Made by a program: the position numbers and the translations under genes
Notes under the pieces: model-generated
What the model was told of the DNA's origin: nothing
Databases searched by the model: none
What the model saw: only the letters and a program-made list of their open reading frames with translations
Shown: one piece after another, positions 2,670 to 33,708 of the stretch
How positions within the stretch are numbered: position 1 is the first letter of the stretch
How the letters are laid out: each line of letters opens with the position of its first letter
Source: Hyphochytrium catenoides
Taxonomy: Eukaryota; Protista; Hyphochytriomycota
Length of the DNA: 34,480 nucleotides
Direction: 5' to 3'
Assembly (NCBI GenBank): GCA_900088475.1
Contig: FLMG01002422.1
Span: forward strand, 1-34,480

Positions 2670-3302
2670 GCATCTTCTCCGGCAACCTTTTCTTCTCGTG
2701 ACAGAAAAGGCAGCAGAGTAGCTTCCAGAGGCAGCTCTTCTAGAGATATTTCTCATCAATGAAATAGCAGCGGCACCGATAGACCGAGAAGCACGTCAAA
2801 GATGGGACAAGGCAGAAGATGCAGAACTCTTCTACAGATTGTCAACGGCAATCAACCGGACAGACGGCAGCAACTCCAAGATTCGGGGTTAAAAAGCAGG
2901 GAGAAACAGTGGAGCAGACACCTTCAGATGTCGCTGCGATAAAAATCACCGCTAAATGTCTGACAACAGGCTAACAGACGAAGCAAATCAAAAGCCTAGG
3001 GCATCCCTAAGAGATAGATCGATAGAAGACAAGCATAATAAAGATCTGAAGCTCAGACTTCTTGGACTCTTTTATAAAAAAAAGAGGAGAAAGAGAGAGA
3101 ATCTGAAGAAGCTCCAAGGTTGAGGCGGCGAGGTGCCTGATGAAGATGCGCCATTGTTTATCTGTTCTTGGCTGTTGCTCTACTAGGAGACAGAGACAGA
3201 GCAGGAGGGCAGGTTCTCATTGTGTTTGCGATCTCATTGTGTGAGAGAGAGCCTTGTGAGGAGCCTGGACACAGCTGAGCAGCTGCTTGATTAACCTTTT
3301 GG

Positions 3303-3307
<5 letters not shown>

Positions 3308-3346
<39 letters not shown>

Positions 3347-3359
3347 AAGAGAGAGAGAG

Positions 3360-3390
<31 letters not shown>

Positions 3391-3710
3391 CAGAAAGAGA
3401 CAGAGACAGAGAGAGAGAGAGAGCGAGAGAGAGAGAGTGAGAGAGAAAGAAAGAGAGAAGACGAGAAGACAAGAGAGAAAAAGAGGGAAAAAGAAAGAGG
3501 GAGAAAAAAGAGAGAGAAGGGGGGAAGAGACAGAAAGAGAGAGAGATAACGAGAGAAACACAAGACACAAAGAGGGTAAGACAGAGATAAGGACAAAACG
3601 GAGAAAGACAGAGAGAAGAATAGACAGGGGTTAGCCCCAAAAGAGAGAAAGACATAAAGGGAGAGAAGAGGATAGGAGAGAAGTCCTGTACAAGGGAAGA
3701 CAGAGGAATA
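3308..3710. repeat. (GA)n microsatellite and purine-rich low-complexity tract
   Basis: Directly visible GA/GACA/GAAA runs; explains the spurious ER/SL-repeat ORFs at 3158..3772. Confidence 0.95.
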
Positions 3711-4992: not shown

Positions 4993-6708
4993 TTACCGTA
5001 GAAGAATCGTTCGGTCTTTCGTCTCCTTCTTCAATCGTCTCGGAGATGAAAGCTCGCTTCCATGTTCTGCCTCCCTATTGTTACTAGTGCCAGGAATCAT
5101 GGTGGCGGGAGCCTGGCTTGCTTCTCTGACGCTATCATTTAGGAGCACTGCCTCTGCAGGATCGGACGCTGCAGCCACCATAATATTGATCAACCTGGCG
5201 CCGCACCAGCTGCAGAAATGCGCGTCAGAGTTATCGGCAACTTTCCTGCACTCTGTGCAGAGAGCAGCGGGTGCCGCGGCCGCGACACCTACAGCTGTGA
5301 GTGCATGAAGAGTAGACTGCCGTTGGGCCATCTCCGTCCTTCGCTCTCCGTCCCACCGCTGGGCGGGAGCTGTCGTCATGGGTGATGATGCTAGAGAAGA
5401 GCTTTGTGTAGCGCCGCCTGGTAAAGAGGCGGGAAGGAGAACGTTGCTCGGACGATGCTCCTCTTCTCCCCTGGGGTTGCCCGCGTTTGGAGAGTGTCCG
5501 CTCCCTGCTGGTAGAGGTAGAAAAGTCCCTTGGTTTGTGCTAAACGCGTCCTTAGAGTCGGGACTGCTGCTCGGATCATAGCCATCTGGCTGAGCTGTGG
5601 CTCCTCTCTTCTTGTTGCGATGAAAGACAAAGCCTGACACTCCAAGACCGACCACTGCCAGGCCAGCAAGAAAGGCTATTATTCCTGCTGCGGTGGTTGA
5701 CAGTCCCGTTGAAGAAGAGGTTTCAGCCTGCTTCTGGGCAAGGTCCCCGCCCTCATGAGGAGATGCTGCTGACCCAGTCCCTTCATCTGATGGGTTGTCA
5801 CTATTACCCGTTGTCTGGCCGTCAGGTGAAGCCGGGCTGGTTCCCGAGCCCGTTGATGGCGAGGGGGAGCTAGCCCCGCCCTCGCTGCTGGAGGTGTTAC
5901 CGCTACATTTAGGCTTCTCTCCAACAAAGAAGATCTCCGAGTACGATATCTTCGTGGTCTTGTCATCTGGCCACAGGGCGTACTGAAAGCGAAGGAGATA
6001 AGATCCAGTTGGCGCCGTCTCTGGCACAGCGAACTCTGGGAAATTTCTAGGGTCCGCCTCAAAGCTCTTGATTACGTCACCGAGTTCCTTCCTGGAGGTT
6101 GCCCGCATGAGCTCCATCTTCAGCCGCATCACTCCGTCTCCATCGAGGTGCTGATTGTCCACCCATCTCGCCTTCATGGCCACCTTTTGTTTGGGAGTGA
6201 AGCTCCAGGCAGCCTGGGGAGCTTCCACACGAAGGGCCTCCGGTTCAGCCATCGTCCGAGGTGTATATTTCTCCGTGGTGCAGCGCTTGTACTTGGACGT
6301 CACGTTGAAGGCAGGAGACAGAGTAGAGAGGCCTCTTTTTTGCTCTGTGTAGCGAAAGCGATAGGCTCCAACAGGAATGAGGCTTGGGACAGACCAGAGC
6401 CAGGACGTACTATCAGTGTTATACTCTGCAACGTCCACCACGGCGTCGGAGCCATCTATCACTTCGATGAAGGCAGGACTAGGGATTGCAGGAGGGCTGG
6501 ACTCCGTTGCTATGAAGCTGAAAGATCCTACGCAGGTTGAGCTGGTGACACATCCTTTCACTGAGTTCCACCTAGCTCCTGGGAGAGATGTTTCTCCTCC
6601 TCCTCCGTCCGCAGATGCTTTATAATTAGCCCCCACGACGAGTAGCGCGCTTAAGATCGCGAGGTATGTACAGGGAGGATGCATAGGAGACGAGGTCCTT
6701 GCTGGCAT
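4993..6708 (-). CDS. Intronless type-I single-pass membrane protein with cytoplasmic zinc ribbon; paralogue B
   Basis: 571-aa ORF. Signal-like YLAILSALLVVGANYKASA. Ectodomain motifs CVGSFSF, WLWSVPSLIPVGAYRFRY, LSPAFNV, LRVEAPQA, YSEIFFVG match paralogue A. TM helix AAGIIAFLAGLAVVGLGVSGFVF followed by HRNKKR. CTEC-x11-CSWC at 5191..5259. Confidence 0.85.
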   Translation of the reverse strand: MPARTSSPMHPPCTYLAILSALLVVGANYKASADGGGGETSLPGARWNSVKGCVTSSTCVGSFSFIATESSPPAIPSPAFIEVIDGSDAVVDVAEYNTDSTSWLWSVPSLIPVGAYRFRYTEQKRGLSTLSPAFNVTSKYKRCTTEKYTPRTMAEPEALRVEAPQAAWSFTPKQKVAMKARWVDNQHLDGDGVMRLKMELMRATSRKELGDVIKSFEADPRNFPEFAVPETAPTGSYLLRFQYALWPDDKTTKISYSEIFFVGEKPKCSGNTSSSEGGASSPSPSTGSGTSPASPDGQTTGNSDNPSDEGTGSAASPHEGGDLAQKQAETSSSTGLSTTAAGIIAFLAGLAVVGLGVSGFVFHRNKKRGATAQPDGYDPSSSPDSKDAFSTNQGTFLPLPAGSGHSPNAGNPRGEEEHRPSNVLLPASLPGGATQSSSLASSPMTTAPAQRWDGERRTEMAQRQSTLHALTAVGVAAAAPAALCTECRKVADNSDAHFCSWCGARLINIMVAAASDPAEAVLLNDSVREASQAPATMIPGTSNNREAEHGSELSSPRRLKKETKDRTILLR

Positions 6709-7272: not shown

Positions 7273-7305
7273 TAGAGAGAGAAAAGAGAGAAGGGGAGAG
7301 AGGGG

Positions 7306-7362
<57 letters not shown>

Positions 7363-9019: not shown

Positions 9020-10764
9020 CTAGCTCTCTGTCGCGTCCTTGTCTTCAACATAAGGAAGTAGTTGGGGGTTCTTGTCAACGCAGCGATTGAAAGGGTTGAG
9101 CAGCATCTTGAGCACCTCCTTCTCGCACTGTTGCAGCAAATCGTCTGCTATCTTCGTTACCTCTGCCGCCTGAGTGGCCGTAGCGTCGGTCTGCTTCGCC
9201 ATAACTGCAACGGCTGTTTGCATGGCCTGCAAAGTTTGCTTTCTTAACTTCATTGACACGTTAATCTGGTTCAAGCTCGCGTCAGCGAAGAAGTCCTCTT
9301 CCATCTTCCGCATAATAGAGACACGTGTCTGGAGATCGGTGGCTGCGCAATAGTCATTGAGAATACTGATGAACAGCATGTTCTCAATGCAAAACTCCTT
9401 AATGCAGTACGCTGCGAACTCTGTGGCAAGCTGTGGCTGCTTAAGGAGCATCTTCAGCCGCCCCGTGTTAGCTACCTTCTTGCTGTTAACCTCTGAGCGG
9501 GTCTTCCTGCTGGTAGCAAGCTCCTCTCCAGGAGCGACCTTGCCTCTGATGCTAGCTTCCGGAGCATTTATCCCCAGCGCCAATGATAGTTTCCAAGGCT
9601 CTATGCCCATAAAGTAGTTGTACGCAGAGAAGGAGATCCACCAGGTCACGATCTCTATAGCCTTAAAGTGCCGGACCATGTCGATAGGGAACGTCGGAGT
9701 GGTGAGAATGACAAAGAGACGCCAGGGCAGCGCTGTGGTTGAGAAGGCGATGACGACCATGATAATGTTCTTCGTCAGCCGGAACTCCTCCTGAACGTTG
9801 CGGAAGAGCCCGATCACGAGGAAGAGGAGAGTGGATGCCGCACAGAAGGGCTGGCCGTAGTACAAGGCATTCTGTTCCGCAGAGCAATGAGGAAAGCAGC
9901 AGAGAGCAGACCATCGAGAAGCAGGAAGGGTGGTCAGAAGGACGAGGTACAGGCTTATAGAGAAGAGCGAGAAAAGCAAAGCGTCGGTCCTTTGGCTTAC
10001 CGCAATGACTGAACTGAAGGTGCAGAGCTTGGTATCCAGTCCAATAAAGGAATAATCCGCATTGAAGGCGATGATCTGCGGCACGCTCAGGATGACAGCC
10101 ATGATGGTGTACTGGACAGCCAGCCACTTGGGCTGCATGGACGCCAAGTGTGGCCTCGCCTTCATGAAAAACTCTTCTGGCTTCTTTCTCCTAGCACGGA
10201 TCAGCTGGACCACATAGCTTGCTTGGACATACCTGCGTCAGGAAGCAAGACCTACAGAGTCAGACACCCAACAAAGAGAGAGGATGATGGCACAGAGAAG
10301 CTTTGAACAGCAGGCAGCCAACAAGAGAGAGGCAGGCAACGACGTGCCACCTACCACATGAGCATGAGCATGCCAGAGACAAAGGGCACCCAGTGAAGAA
10401 TGGGATAGTAGAGCCAGAACATGATGCAGTTTGGTGCATGGAAGAGAGCAGGATGCGTGTCCGCCAGGATGCCTACAGCCACTCCTACGTGCGTAGACGC
10501 CTGGAGCCAGAATGGAGCCACGTTGAGAGGAAAGAACTTCCTCCGCTTGTACATAAGGTAGACGGTGATCACGGTTGAGATCTCCACAAGGACATTGCAT
10601 AGAATGCCCAAGGGAAGAGAGTATGACGTTCGATAGCGAGAGAAGTACGTGTCATCCTCTGGACCAGTGACATATGGAGACCTGATCTCTGTGTAGTTGG
10701 TCGCCTCGGCATCTCTTTGCATCAGCGGCAGCGCGCTCATATCTGTGCCGTTGCTAGCAAACAT
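9020..10764 (-). CDS. 7TM-RGS protein (seven TM helices plus C-terminal regulator of G-protein signalling domain)
   Basis: Exons 10764..10355, 10232..10001, 9871..9020; introns 10354..10233 (GTAGGT..CAG) and 10000..9872 (GTAAGC..CAG) keep the frame. Seven hydrophobic segments, N-terminal NGT/NYT sequons, and an RGS box (LLKQPQLATEFAAYCIKEFCIENMLF...FFADASLNQINVS...EKEVLKML..PFNR) at about 9457..9081. Confidence 0.88.
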
Positions 10765-11369: not shown

Positions 11370-11601
11370 GGAGAGAGCACAGAGAGAGAAAGAGAGAGAG
11401 AGAGAGCGAAAGAGAGAGAGAGAGAGAGAGTGATAAAGCGAGAAGAAAGAGAGAATGAGGGAGAGAAAAATTGAGAGGTGACCAAGCTCACAAAAAAGAT
11501 AAGGGTGATAAGGGAAGAGCCAGTCGGGAAGGTCGAAGAAAATCGCTTTGTGGGCATGAAGAAACAGAGAGAAGAGAGAGAGAGAGAGAGAGAGNNNNNN
11601 N

Positions 11602-11652
<51 letters not shown>

Positions 11653-26000: not shown

Positions 26001-28033
26001 AGAAGCGGCAGTAAAGAATGTTTTGATGAGGTTGGAAGGCCGAAGTGTGACCGTCCTTCAACATTCAAATAACCCTTCTTACATTCTCTACGACTAACGT
26101 TGTCCCTAAACGAGTTCCTACCTAGTCCCTTTACGTATATCCGATCTTTATACTCAATGCTTGTCTCTTTCTGCCATACCTCCATACGTTATGTGCTGTT
26201 CTCACATATCTGGGTCTCGTTTATCCGTTAGCAAAGAAGCGAGGTATCTGTCGTCCATCCGGATTAACTTTAGCGAGCTCAAGTTGCTCACAGTTATTGG
26301 CCGAGGGGGAATGGGCGAGGTTATTAAGGCTGAATACTTAGGGACCGTGGTGTGCGTCAAGAGACTACGACGAGACCTCATCACCCCGCAAAGTTTGCTA
26401 GAGTTCAGAGGCGAGATAGAACTCATGTCCTCCCTCAGGCACCCCAATATTGTGCAGGTAAGACACAGGGGCTACTTATACGAGTGCTTAAGTGTCAACT
26501 CGCTGTTTTATATATTGAGCTTACTAGAAATTGCGTTGCTGCGGCCACAGCGTAGCCTAACTCAGTTCTGACAAATGTCCCGCTGTTCGCTCCACATGTG
26601 CACCCTACCCTCATTAGTTTATTGGTGCGAGTTGGGATAATCCTAGTAACGTTTGTATGGTTATGGAGTTCATGGAAACCGGTGACGTACACTCTGTACT
26701 CCACACGCCGAACCTAAAGCTTTCATGGGCAGACCCACTGCTCAAAATAGGTAAGAAGCATGTCATCTGTCTTTAACTCATCGACTTATATTCTCCTCTG
26801 GCCATTTACTTGTTCTATCTGGAGCTACGATCCTTTCTTTACCTATAATGTAGTGGTATAGGCCTTTCTTGCTTGTCCCTCCCAGTGACTGAGCCATCGC
26901 CTTGCATTCTTTAGCTGTGGATGCAGCCCAGGGGATGCTATACCTGCACACAAATGATCCTCCAATTATACACCGAGACCTAAAGAGTGTCAACCTGCTC
27001 TGCTCCGGGACCTACGGCTGCAAGGTGACAGACTTTGGGCTTAGCCGCAAGCTTCAATCAGACCTCAAGACCGTAGTAGGAACGCCCTTCTGGCTGGCAC
27101 CGGAGGTAAGCACAGCGGCATCTTGAACACTGTCAATTCGACGGTATTGCCTTGATTAAACCCGATCGTGTTCGCCGTCGCGCCACTATCTCCGACCCGC
27201 CTTGGTCTTAGCAACTCGCTGCAACTAGTTCTGGTCATGCAAGTGCTGTGCTTGTTATCCCTAAATTTCAGTGCTCATTTCTTCCTGTCATCTTTGCAAG
27301 GTTATCCGCAATGAGAGCTACACTATCAAGGCAGATGTCTATTCCTTTGGCATTGTGCTGTATGAGCTGGAGGTGAGTGGGTTGATACCCCCTAGCGCCT
27401 CAAATCTCCTCAGCTGTCGATCTTCGTACTTCTTATGCATCGGAGACTAGACGCGATTGCTTGCTTACGGTCATCTTGATCCTACCTAGACCCGCAAGAA
27501 CCCGTATTATGAACATAAGAAGGAGGGCAAGAAAGATGGGGTACACTTACTGGTTGCTATCGCACACCGTGGCCTTCGCCCTTCGCTTCCCGAGACTACT
27601 CTGCCGAGGTTAAGGAAGCTGATTGAAGATTGCTGGCAGGTGAGCTGCCGATACGACTCTGCTATTCACCTATCTCCTTTCTTGTGTTCACGTTAACACT
27701 CTGTTACCTTACCGGCTTAGTCTAACTTCTCATCTCTTCCAGAATGATCCACAAGGCCGGCCCACGATGTCGGAAGTTCTCATGCGACTTCAGGGCGAGA
27801 TCCGTCTGGAGATCAGTAATGAGACAGACAGATTCGTGAGTGAACGAAGGGCTGTACTACAGAGACGGTTGCGCGGTCTGGAAAGCGACTACCTTTCCCG
27901 CGCGTCTTCCTTTATGTCGGCATTGGACGGTCTCAGTTACAACGACGACAGAGGGACGCTACAGGGACATGCTAACAATACTTTCGAAGATTCGCAAAGC
28001 AGCCTTGTAAAAAGCGTCCGCTTCAGAGTTTGA
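23085..28033 (+). CDS. Multi-pass membrane TKL (Raf/MAP3K-like) protein kinase with adenylyl-cyclase-like 6TM module
   Basis: Exons approx. 23085-23523, 23719-23945, 24081-24264, 24563-24706, 25034-25292, 25386-(about 25420 or 25439), 25517-25751, 25939-26030, 26232-26457, 26618-26750, 26915-27105, 27301-27372, 27490-27639, 27743-28033. Complete catalytic motifs: [66 protein letters not shown]. Confidence 0.9.
24888..24966. repeat. Intronic (CT)n tract
   Basis: Directly visible inside kinase intron 24707..25033. Confidence 0.9.
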
Positions 28034-30934: not shown

Positions 30935-33115
30935 ATGGACTCCAATATGCTGCAGAAACCTGGAGCGCCAGCCGCCAAGTCTCAAACGAACTGGAACATG
31001 CTGGGTAGTGGCTGGGATCCTATTAATCTAAATCTTCTTGAGGGCACAGAGAGACGACCCGTACCATCTCCTGCTGGTTGGAGTCAACAGCAGGCCTCAG
31101 GAGTCGTTCCACCTGGTGCGGTGGCTCCGTTGGGGAAGGAGTTGTTTCTTAGCGAAATAGAGGTAAGATAATCTATATATGAACAGACAGCGGTAGCTAC
31201 CGAGTGGCTCGCCCTATTGTTTTTGGGCTTGAGCTTTGGGCGTTACTTTTGGAGTCCTTATCAACACTAGATCTGCATCGATGATCTGATCGTTGCTTCC
31301 CCTTTACACTTGTATCTATGTAGAATTTTTTCACTGATGACGTGGCCTCTGCGCTTCAAGTGGCGGCCGATGATGCCATGAATGCCAACGCGACACAGCT
31401 CCAACTATCTGTCGTCGATCTCTCCCCTTTGGACGGGCTTGGTGGGGTGCCGCCACCTGCATGGCGAGCACAGGACCAGGGTGTAGGACCAGCGACTCAA
31501 GTTCACCTAATGGATCAGTTGAACCGCACGTTGCTTGAAGGGCTACAGCAGACGTTGCAGACGAGCGGAGGTGAGCCTAATTTCTTCGCCGTTATACAGG
31601 GTTTATTGTTGCTTGACAAGGTTTGAAGACGATAAAGAAGTAGTATCATGGGGATTATGAAGCAAGAGAGACAATTGATAGGGAAGCATCAGAGCACCGA
31701 TGCATGACGATTTGGGAAGTTAGAACTCATGTTGGACTAGAACTAACTGCCGTCCCCTCTATAGGTGCCCTTGGAAATCGAGCTAAGCAAAGTTCGAGTT
31801 CAGTGTCAACAGCTACGAATGTGACGGCCTCTGCAAATAAGAAACAGGGTAAGGTGCCGGCCAAATCCACGCCACAGGTCCAGGGCAAGCCTCCACGAGT
31901 TAAGGAGAAGCCGGCTACGATCCCCGCGAGAAGTACGATGCTGTTGGAGAGGACCGTTCCTGCCAAGCGTGACTTTTTTGGAAGAATGGTCAGCACGACG
32001 AGCGAGGAGGCAGATAGTCCGCGAGAGTCGATGTCTGAGGACTCTGAAGAGAACAAGAAAATGTGAGCGAGAAACTTCTTCTTCTTGTCCACTTCCCATT
32101 ACAACGCCCTTGGTCTTATCTCGCTGACTTAACTCTATCAACAGGACCAAGCGAGAGAAGAACATTCTGGCGTGCAGAAAAGCGCGCCGAAAGAGAAGAG
32201 AGAAGATGGCAAGCATGGAAGAGCGCCTCCGAGAACTGGAGGCCAAGAATAGCGCCTTAGAAAAAAGGCTACGTGTCACATCGCTTCCTACCGATAACTT
32301 GCCAGCAGATTTTGTCGAGAAGCAGGACTTTGACTCGGTGAAGGAGGACCGTATTGCGGTGATAACAGGTATTTATAGGGCCATGAATGATGGCAAGCTG
32401 GAAACAGAACAGCATAACTTCCATCCAAACTGCGTGATGGTCAAACCTATGGAGGAGCTTATTGGGGCTCAGAGCATGTGGAGAAGTTGGTAAGTGGAAA
32501 CGGTTGGTTCTTCACTGTCATGATTGGCACACAAAGTGTTTGAGCTTTGCTTTACCTCTTTTCTCTCTACGCCCTAAGCGGAGGCTTATCTTAGTTTGTC
32601 AGCCAGTGCGCGTTGCGAGGCCAACTTTCCTGTCGTTAGTGGTATAATGACGATACTGACAGCGCTTCTCGGTTCGCAGGAGTGCGCTGCGGCAGCGGTT
32701 TGCCAGTATGCATTGGGAAATTCTGAAGATTGATCCACTGGACTTGAGAGGCGATCAGATACGGACGGAGTGGGTCTTCCATGGTCTACTCAAGGGAGAT
32801 GTGTCAACCATTGATGAGCTGGCAAGGGTCAAGAGAGAAGACCTGAAGAGGGTCTTTGAGATGGAGGAAAATTCCGCTCCTTCGTCATCACTCTTTGTCG
32901 TACCTCCCAAATCTCCAAAGTCAGGCTCCAAACTGACTGCGATAGAGTTCCAAGGACGGTCTTACTATATCTTCACGGCAGACAATCGCCTCGTCTTTGT
33001 CAATCACAACTTTGTCCGCGCCCCAACGTTCAGGCGCATGGGGGCTCCAGAGGATAGCGCAGCGCTGGAGGCAGGCCCTGTAAGTGGAATATCAACTTCC
33101 CTTGTGGCCCGTTAG
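30935..33115 (+). CDS. bZIP transcription factor with C-terminal SnoaL/NTF2-like domain
   Basis: Exons 30935-31162, 31324-31570, 31765-32062, 32145-32489, 32680-33115, all GT-AG and frame-consistent. Basic region KREKNILACRKARRKRREK (N-x7-R) followed by zipper MEERLRELEAKNSALEKRL. C-terminal IYRAMNDGKLETEQHNFHPNCVM..IGAQSMWRSWSALRQRFASMHWEI..GDQIRTEWVFHG..IEFQGRSYYIFTADNRLVFV. Confidence 0.85.
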
Positions 33116-33479
33116 TTCTTCAAGGACGCTAAGAGGAGCCTGAAGAAGAGCAGTGATCATGTATATAAGAAGATAATTATTGTGACTACGCTAGACTCTC
33201 CCAGGGCCCATCCCTAAGTCTATATATGACGCTTATGCTTGTTGGAGCAGTAGCATACCCTCTTCCTTGTTAATCGGAGAAAGTGGCGAACGAGAGATTT
33301 CTGACGATGAAGCTAAGGTAGCTTCGACAATTCAAGCTGATTAAAGAGCTATCTATCTATGAAACGCAAATTGATTGGAGAGGACTTCTAATCACATTGC
33401 CTGACCCTGTGCCCAAGACATGTCGACTTCTAGCAATCTCAACAGCCAACCACTAGCAATAGTTCTACGAATGTCGTCG

Positions 33480-33525
33480 TCAATATTATCACTATTGGCA
33501 TCTCAATATTATCACTATTGGCATC
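33480..33525. repeat. Perfect 23-bp tandem duplication
   Basis: tcaatattatcactattggcatc twice in succession. Confidence 0.95.
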
Positions 33526-33708
33526 ACAATCATCCCTATCATCTCCAACATCAAACCGGTCACCATTGTGAAAACGAGTGCTCGCGAATGGGCTTTACTT
33601 AACCCATGAGCGCAATTGAACAGCTCCGGCCTATGAAAATCTAATGGATAGGACTTTGGACTGCCTCTCACTGATTGCAATCATAACGCCTCTCGCTGTC
33701 TTGTAGAA

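Follow-up and report, generated by a model that had tools for sequence, protein, structure and literature searches.

A spliced bZIP gene of Hyphochytrium catenoides encoding a C-terminal domain with a predicted NTF2-like fold

Introduction

Direct small-molecule control of eukaryotic transcription factors is well documented in few families, among them nuclear receptors, bHLH-PAS proteins and fungal zinc-cluster factors. A contig of the hyphochytriomycete Hyphochytrium catenoides (FLMG01002422.1, assembly GCA_900088475.1), analyzed here over positions 1 to 34,480 of the forward strand (the window, 34,480 nt), raises the question of whether a stramenopile has arrived at such control with a bZIP protein. 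The initial annotation, which was based on the DNA letters and a list of open reading frames (ORFs), placed on the + strand at 30935–33115 a bZIP gene whose product would continue into a SnoaL/NTF2-like pocket, and proposed a ligand-gated, possibly redox-sensitive regulator. Our analyses establish a real, spliced nuclear gene encoding a bZIP transcription factor. Its C-terminal domain, hereafter the tail, probably has an NTF2-like fold, and we lean slightly toward a bZIP factor in which this domain serves as a second module, for dimerisation, partner selection or regulation in cis.

Gene structure and transcription

The gene comprises five exons totalling 1554 nt, or 517 codons and a stop (Table 1), and its start codon and terminal TAG fall at the two ends first annotated. 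All four introns run from GT to AG in consistent phases, a pyrimidine-rich tract precedes each YAG acceptor, and three of the junctions complete split codons correctly. GC content is 0.43–0.48 in introns versus 0.49–0.57 in exons. Codon-usage log-likelihoods, for which three long ORFs from other parts of the window served as the training set, were positive for each exon (0.11–0.20 bits per codon) solely in the model frame, and negative in all frames for every intron and for the downstream flank. A window-wide tblastn with all exons found no paralogue of the gene in the window.

Transcripts were sought by a look-up of public runs, which returned three runs from three studies (X1, X2 and X3), each with about 5% of the sampled words, and the contigs were aligned to the gene at 95–99% identity. 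A 260-nt contig from X1 covers 30954–31160 and joins 31160/31162 to 31322/31324, skipping 161 nt with GT..AG ends, and a 151-nt contig from X2 covers 31483–31568 and joins 31568/31570 to 31763/31765, skipping 194 nt with the same ends. These joints confirm introns 1 and 2 exactly. Exon 3 is covered by an X2 contig (31903–32053) and by a contig from X3, a soil metatranscriptome (31772–32011).

Apart from gene structure, three public runs from unrelated sources, including one from soil, contain contigs 95–99% identical to exons 1–3 (30954–32053), which implies that the organism or a close relative lives in soil and transcribes the bZIP gene there.

The remaining two junctions we infer from frame logic, splice motifs, matching phases, codon usage and a predicted helix that crosses the second of them. 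Joining 32062 to 32145 (GT at 32063, AG at 32143–32144) completes a split ATG codon and sets the end of exon 3 (...EENKK) directly upstream of TKREKNILACRKARRKRREK in exon 4; intron 3 is the sole phase-compatible GT/AG pair in the vicinity. The exon 3 frame meets a stop at 32064–32066. Because the open frame of exon 4 does not begin until 32128 and contains no ATG ahead of 32206, past the basic region, that region is translatable only if spliced to an upstream exon, which bears out the original observation that the bZIP appears only after this join. The exon 4 frame is closed by a stop at 32491–32493, one codon past a consensus GTAAGT donor, and the frame of exon 5 is open from 32660, 20 nt ahead of a CAG acceptor in matching phase, with no ATG before 32708. 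As this acceptor reads CAGGAG, an alternative acceptor 3 nt downstream is possible.

The bZIP region

The protein's N-terminal half (exons 1–3) is long and of low complexity. Exon 3, in which no Pfam family was matched, is rich in Ser, Thr, Lys and Pro and ends in an acidic Ser cluster followed by NKK, the start of the basic region; the core bZIP lies entirely within exon 4. Pfam bZIP_2 (PF07716) matched exon 4 over residues 2–42 with 25.3 bits (E 1.6e-5, cut-off 22.3), and bZIP_1 (PF00170) gave 16.4 bits, under its cut-off of 27.6. A search of solved structures with exon 4 gave 32 matches at E up to 1, of which 31 were bZIPs (C/EBP, Jun, CREB, GCN4) and one was an eIF-2B chain (0.82). C/EBP alpha ranked first (E 0.015), with KREKNILACRKAR aligned to RRERNNIAVRKSR.

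The N-x7-R signature of the basic region reads NILACRKAR and retains the invariant Asn and Arg in alignment with C/EBP alpha and Jun. It is continuous with the zipper helix, and the heptads begin nine residues past the Arg, which together with the bZIP_2 score places the protein in the bZIP family. Zipper d positions are M24, L31 and L38 and a positions are L28, N35 and L42, and the Asn, canonical at an a position, falls opposite its C/EBP counterpart in the alignment; T45 and P48 end the repeat after only three heptads. Folding exon 4 alone, AlphaFold2 predicted one helix over residues 2–44 with a predicted local distance difference test (pLDDT) score of 89–98. The atypical basic region, with a Cys on its DNA-facing side, and the short zipper are therefore as initially described. 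This Cys, at +4 counted from the Asn, takes the place of a Val in C/EBP and of an Ala in Jun, at a position that we take to face the bases as in established bZIP–DNA structures. In Fos and Jun the redox-sensitive Cys sits at +7, which is Ala here. Redox sensitivity had been suggested for this protein on the strength of its Cys; with the residue away from the known Fos/Jun position, redox control through it is speculative.

Layout and predicted fold of the tail

The tail begins at residue 62 of exon 4 and ends near residue 111 of exon 5, a length of roughly 160 residues, or about 116 without an insertion. It had been described as following the zipper directly; instead, a proline-containing linker of about 17 residues separates the two, and the tail, its 44-residue insertion included, would form a compact domain of alpha+beta type. 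AlphaFold2 was run on exons 4 and 5 separately, for exon 5 in single-sequence mode. In the exon-4 part it placed a helix at 62–81 (pLDDT 61–72) and another at 102–109; exon 5 alone gave a helix at 2–8, two helices within the insertion and three strands between 85 and 108, at a mean pLDDT of 36. The predicted helix thus runs across the 4/5 junction, from exon-4 residues 102–109 into exon-5 residues 2–8. The strand character of HWEILKI and QIRTEWVFHGLL was read from sequence only. The helix-helix-strand-helix-beta-meander pattern first proposed was reproduced only in part, by the helices and the three strands of the models, those of exon 5 being of very low confidence. The FHPNCV motif and the DVSTIDEL...PPKSPKS stretch are both present as reported. 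A hidden in-frame intron beneath the insertion was considered and rejected, given an in-frame codon usage of +0.17 and a poor donor motif.

The NTF2-like fold is an alpha+beta cone in which three helices pack into a curved sheet of five to six strands. The order of elements predicted in the tail fits an NTF2/SnoaL fold, as does its size of about 116 residues once the insertion is set aside; both are suggestive. Protein language-model (Atlas) neighbours point the same way. The ten top neighbours of exon 5 that carry a family assignment all belong to a single family or clan, those named being SnoaL, SnoaL_2, DUF1348 and LEH (limonene epoxide hydrolase) at 0.86–0.89, and for the exon-4 part of the tail the only named neighbours were SnoaL_2, SnoaL_4 and DUF3804 at 0.79–0.82. 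That two non-overlapping halves should point to one clan is harder to obtain by chance. The patterns Y-x-A-M-N-D-G, F-H-P-N-C-V and G-x-x-x-M-W-x-x-W-x-x-L-x-x-x-F, followed by strand-like segments, appear to thread co-linearly with the SnoaL_2 consensus across the exon junction, a resemblance that does not count as a test.

Table 1 Coordinates of the bZIP gene and of the regions of its predicted product
Feature	Positions	Strand	Details
Exon 1	30935–31162	+	76 codons; ATG at 30935; ends in phase 0; codon usage +0.12, model frame only
Intron 1	31163–31323	+	161 nt; GTAAGA..TAG; X1 contig joint 31160>31322
Exon 2	31324–31570	+	82 codons and 1 base; codon usage +0.18
Intron 2	31571–31764	+	194 nt; GTGAGC..TAG; X2 contig joint 31568>31763
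Exon 3	31765–32062	+	Translation; X2 and X3 contigs
Intron 3	32063–32144	+	82 nt; GTGAGC..CAG; predicted, outside read coverage
Exon 4	32145–32489	+	bZIP, linker and first part of tail
bZIP	32145–32277	+	Basic region, exon-4 residues 1–20; three-heptad zipper, residues 21–44
Linker	32278–32328	+	About 17 residues, TSLPTDNLPADFVEKQD, with prolines; helix ends at residue 44, pLDDT drops to 52–63
First tail part	32329–32489	+	Helix 62–81, FHPNCVMV segment, start of helix 102–109 (AlphaFold2)
Intron 4	32490–32679	+	190 nt; GTAAGT..CAG; predicted, outside read coverage
Exon 5	32680–33115	+	Rest of tail; stop TAG at 33113–33115
Exon-5 residues 1–40	32680–32800	+	Helix continued (ALRQRFA); two strand-like segments (HWEILKI, QIRTEWVFHGLL)
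Insertion	32801–32932	+	About 44 residues; amphipathic helix, then Ser/Pro-rich loop; modelled helices 44–47 and 52–60
Beta-meander	32933–33025	+	LTAIEF / RSYYIFTA / RLVFVN; strands 85–90, 93–100 and 103–108, low confidence
C-terminal end	33026–33115	+	About 29 residues and TAG; pLDDT 23–34

Possible roles of the tail

The tail domain most probably adopts an NTF2/SnoaL-like cone fold, and a bZIP dimer would hold two such domains side by side. Self-association is known for many NTF2-like domains. Taken together, these considerations suggest that the tail is likely a second module, serving dimerisation, partner selection or regulation in cis, which would compensate for the short zipper and tune DNA binding, much as the SnoaL_2 extension of bacterial ECF41/56 sigma factors tunes sigma activity. 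Conceivably, this could be modulated by a ligand bound in the pocket of the cone.

A number of results weigh against this reading. Pfam and NCBIfam searches at E up to 10, with both halves of the tail and with sub-pieces, gave no match to the NTF2 clan, and a sequence search of solved structures with exon 5 returned two chance matches and no NTF2-like chain. HMMER with exon 5 against 1.84 billion representative proteins found no true relative and no eukaryotic protein. None of the collections searched contained a relative, so that conservation lends the tail no support; the protein collections evidently lacked this genome's own proteome. Language-model scores under 0.9 often arise by chance, which makes each of the two results, taken alone, a lead, and the exon-5 model, at pLDDT 36, is unusable for a fold search. 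With no profile or sequence match, a poor model and sub-threshold neighbours, the SnoaL/NTF2 fold is not established as the initial annotation had implied. Exons 4 and 5 are likewise without any read or contig in the three runs (32054–33400), so the earlier premise that both domains share one transcript holds for the single gene model and is demonstrated for exons 1–3 only, with junctions 3/4 and 4/5 resting on the features given above. Finally, the dimerisation role of the tail is one that we purely infer.

The other searches for relatives were also negative. Word-index searches with exons 4 and 5 were blank over a length window of 63–252 residues across both queries, a window that excludes full-length relatives. 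JGI metagenome contigs contained matches to patterns from both exons, none of which was confirmed by tblastn. Against plasmids, tblastn found nothing with exon 5 and three chance matches at E 2–10 with the exon-4 part of the tail, and one plasmid record browsed for SnoaL genes held no NTF2-like gene in 50 kb.

Several individual matches were set aside. The sole HMMER match, P0001, was judged spurious: it is a bacterial adhesin of 1591 residues with CshA/Big_9/cadherin repeats, and its score was summed over five of them. One plasmid match, from Ralstonia, lies in unannotated DNA on the strand opposite to the longest local ORF, and another, a Hymenobacter hypothetical protein, has only weak Pfam matches of zinc-ribbon type.

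We consider it unlikely that the tail acts as the ligand gate first proposed, in which an NTF2/SnoaL-like pocket binds a small hydrophobic molecule and thereby switches dimerisation or DNA binding, with the Cys adding redox control. Such a gate would agree with the order of bZIP, linker and sensor-like domain seen in aureochromes and in bZIP-PAS proteins, the latter present in oomycetes (PMC4046829), and with the presence of pocket enzymes (SnoaL, limonene epoxide hydrolase) among the language-model neighbours. However, the exon-5 model is too poor to show a pocket, no adjoining metabolic gene hints at a ligand, and the Cys is off the Fos/Jun redox position. The SnoaL_2 extensions of ECF sigma factors, moreover, act by cis-regulatory contacts with no ligand named (PMC7730460). 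Ligand gating is thus possible but unsupported. There is a small chance that the tail forms a genuine ligand pocket of NTF2-like type and gates the dimerisation of a weak three-heptad bZIP, which would make the protein a one-component, small-molecule-sensing stramenopile factor unrelated to nuclear receptors.

Also unlikely, in our estimate, is a tail of another fold altogether: a region peculiar to the lineage, alpha+beta or in part disordered, serving for example in activation or protein docking, whose likeness to SnoaL would reflect a generic succession of helices and strands. The complete lack of profile matches even at E up to 10, the lack of a related sequence among 1.84 billion proteins, the low AlphaFold2 confidence beyond the first tail helix and the frequency of chance Atlas scores below 0.9 would all be expected of such a tail. 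Against it, both independent halves indicate the same clan, which is a small fraction of protein families, and both the element order and the size of the tail outside the insertion match the NTF2 fold. No sequence motif common to the NTF2-like superfamily is known (PMC3924330), so that blank profile searches with half-domains are weak evidence and weigh little here.

An error in the gene model, with exon 5 or exons 4 and 5 outside the mRNA and the protein ending soon past the zipper, or with exon 5 a separate or decayed gene, would account for the uncovered interval in the three runs but is very unlikely given the abutment of each frame on its splice site in matching phase, the coding-type codon usage of exon 5 over 144 codons (insertion included), the position of its first ATG already inside a predicted helix, and the continuation of that helix across the 4/5 junction.

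Comparison with known systems

The closest known bZIPs are the C/EBPs (C/EBP alpha, 1nwq and 8k8c), which gave the best structural-sequence match. NILACRKAR compares with NNIAVRKSR, and the alignment pairs the Asn, the Ala at +3, Arg-Lys at +5/+6, the Arg at +8, the Leu residues of the zipper and its a-position Asn. The H. catenoides protein differs in having Cys for the specificity-determining Val at +4 and Ala for Ser at +7, three heptads in place of four to five, and a large domain after the zipper that C/EBPs lack.

In domain order the protein resembles aureochromes and bZIP-PAS proteins, which likewise carry a bZIP, a short linker and a C-terminal sensor-type domain on one chain. However, Pfam and NCBIfam searches with exons 4 and 5 as half-domain queries detected neither a PAS nor a LOV domain at E up to 10, and the predicted elements of the tail follow another order, with a long helix first and the beta-meander last. 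We know of no chromophore-binding motif in the tail. No sign emerged of the kinship with oomycete bZIPs carrying conserved C-terminal domains that the initial annotation had raised: exon 5 retrieved no eukaryotic protein in the exhaustive search, and a survey of 71 Phytophthora sojae bZIPs lists one PAS and otherwise no extra domain (PMC4046829).

Fungal bZIPs with DUF3425 (PF11905) offer a second parallel, in that their bZIP precedes a C-terminal domain of about 100–130 residues that is uncharacterised (PMC9223689, PMC12765306, PMC13113314). They belong to another lineage, and PF11905 was not matched here in the same half-domain searches at E up to 10.

Among regulators with an NTF2-superfamily domain, the ECF41 and ECF56 sigma factors (SigJ, SigG1) carry a fused SnoaL_2 domain that contacts and tunes the DNA-binding core in cis, with no ligand named (PMC7730460). 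The parallel is with a DNA-directed transcription regulator bearing such a domain at its C-terminus, known in theirs and predicted in ours. The DNA-binding module and the domain of life differ, and Pfam recognises their SnoaL_2 but not the tail, which matches no profile of the clan (CL0051) and is therefore not classed as a SnoaL or SnoaL_2 member. SnoaL-type polyketide cyclases and free-standing NTF2-like proteins are the nearest language-model neighbours of both halves. Unlike these, the tail has a 44-residue insertion and a bZIP ahead of it; it shows no sequence-level similarity to them, and their catalytic residues cannot be aligned. NTF2-like families do expand in stramenopiles, as in the diatom Seminavis robusta with a 68-copy family (bioRxiv 10.1101/2020.02.11.942037). 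A full-text literature search for a bZIP with a SnoaL or NTF2-like domain found no paper describing the pairing.

Other features of the window

Elsewhere in the window, a 397-codon ORF at 9020–10213 (−) has a C-terminal Pfam RGS domain (28.1 bits, above cut-off). ORFs of 643 and 571 codons at 828–2759 (−) and 4993–6708 (−), both in the codon-usage training set, have no Pfam family above cut-off, and an ORF fragment at 26161–26571 (+) with protein-kinase subdomain motifs is part of an intron-rich kinase gene. Microsatellites of (GA)n/(AG)n with 42–125 copies lie at 3302–3546, 7274–7362, 11371–11466 and 11566–11649, and account for the strong purine skew of their 2-kb composition bins. About 370 nt downstream of the bZIP gene's stop, at 33480–33530, is a 23-nt tandem repeat of 2.2 copies.

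Significance

This instance of the gene is intron-rich, has a long N-terminal region and carries an insertion in its tail, and the fold is unproven from this copy alone. A bZIP with an NTF2-like pocket, if true, would be a new architecture of ligand control, parallel to the light-gated aureochromes of stramenopiles. Even without a ligand, the combination of a short zipper with a second self-associating domain would represent a new way of setting bZIP partner specificity.

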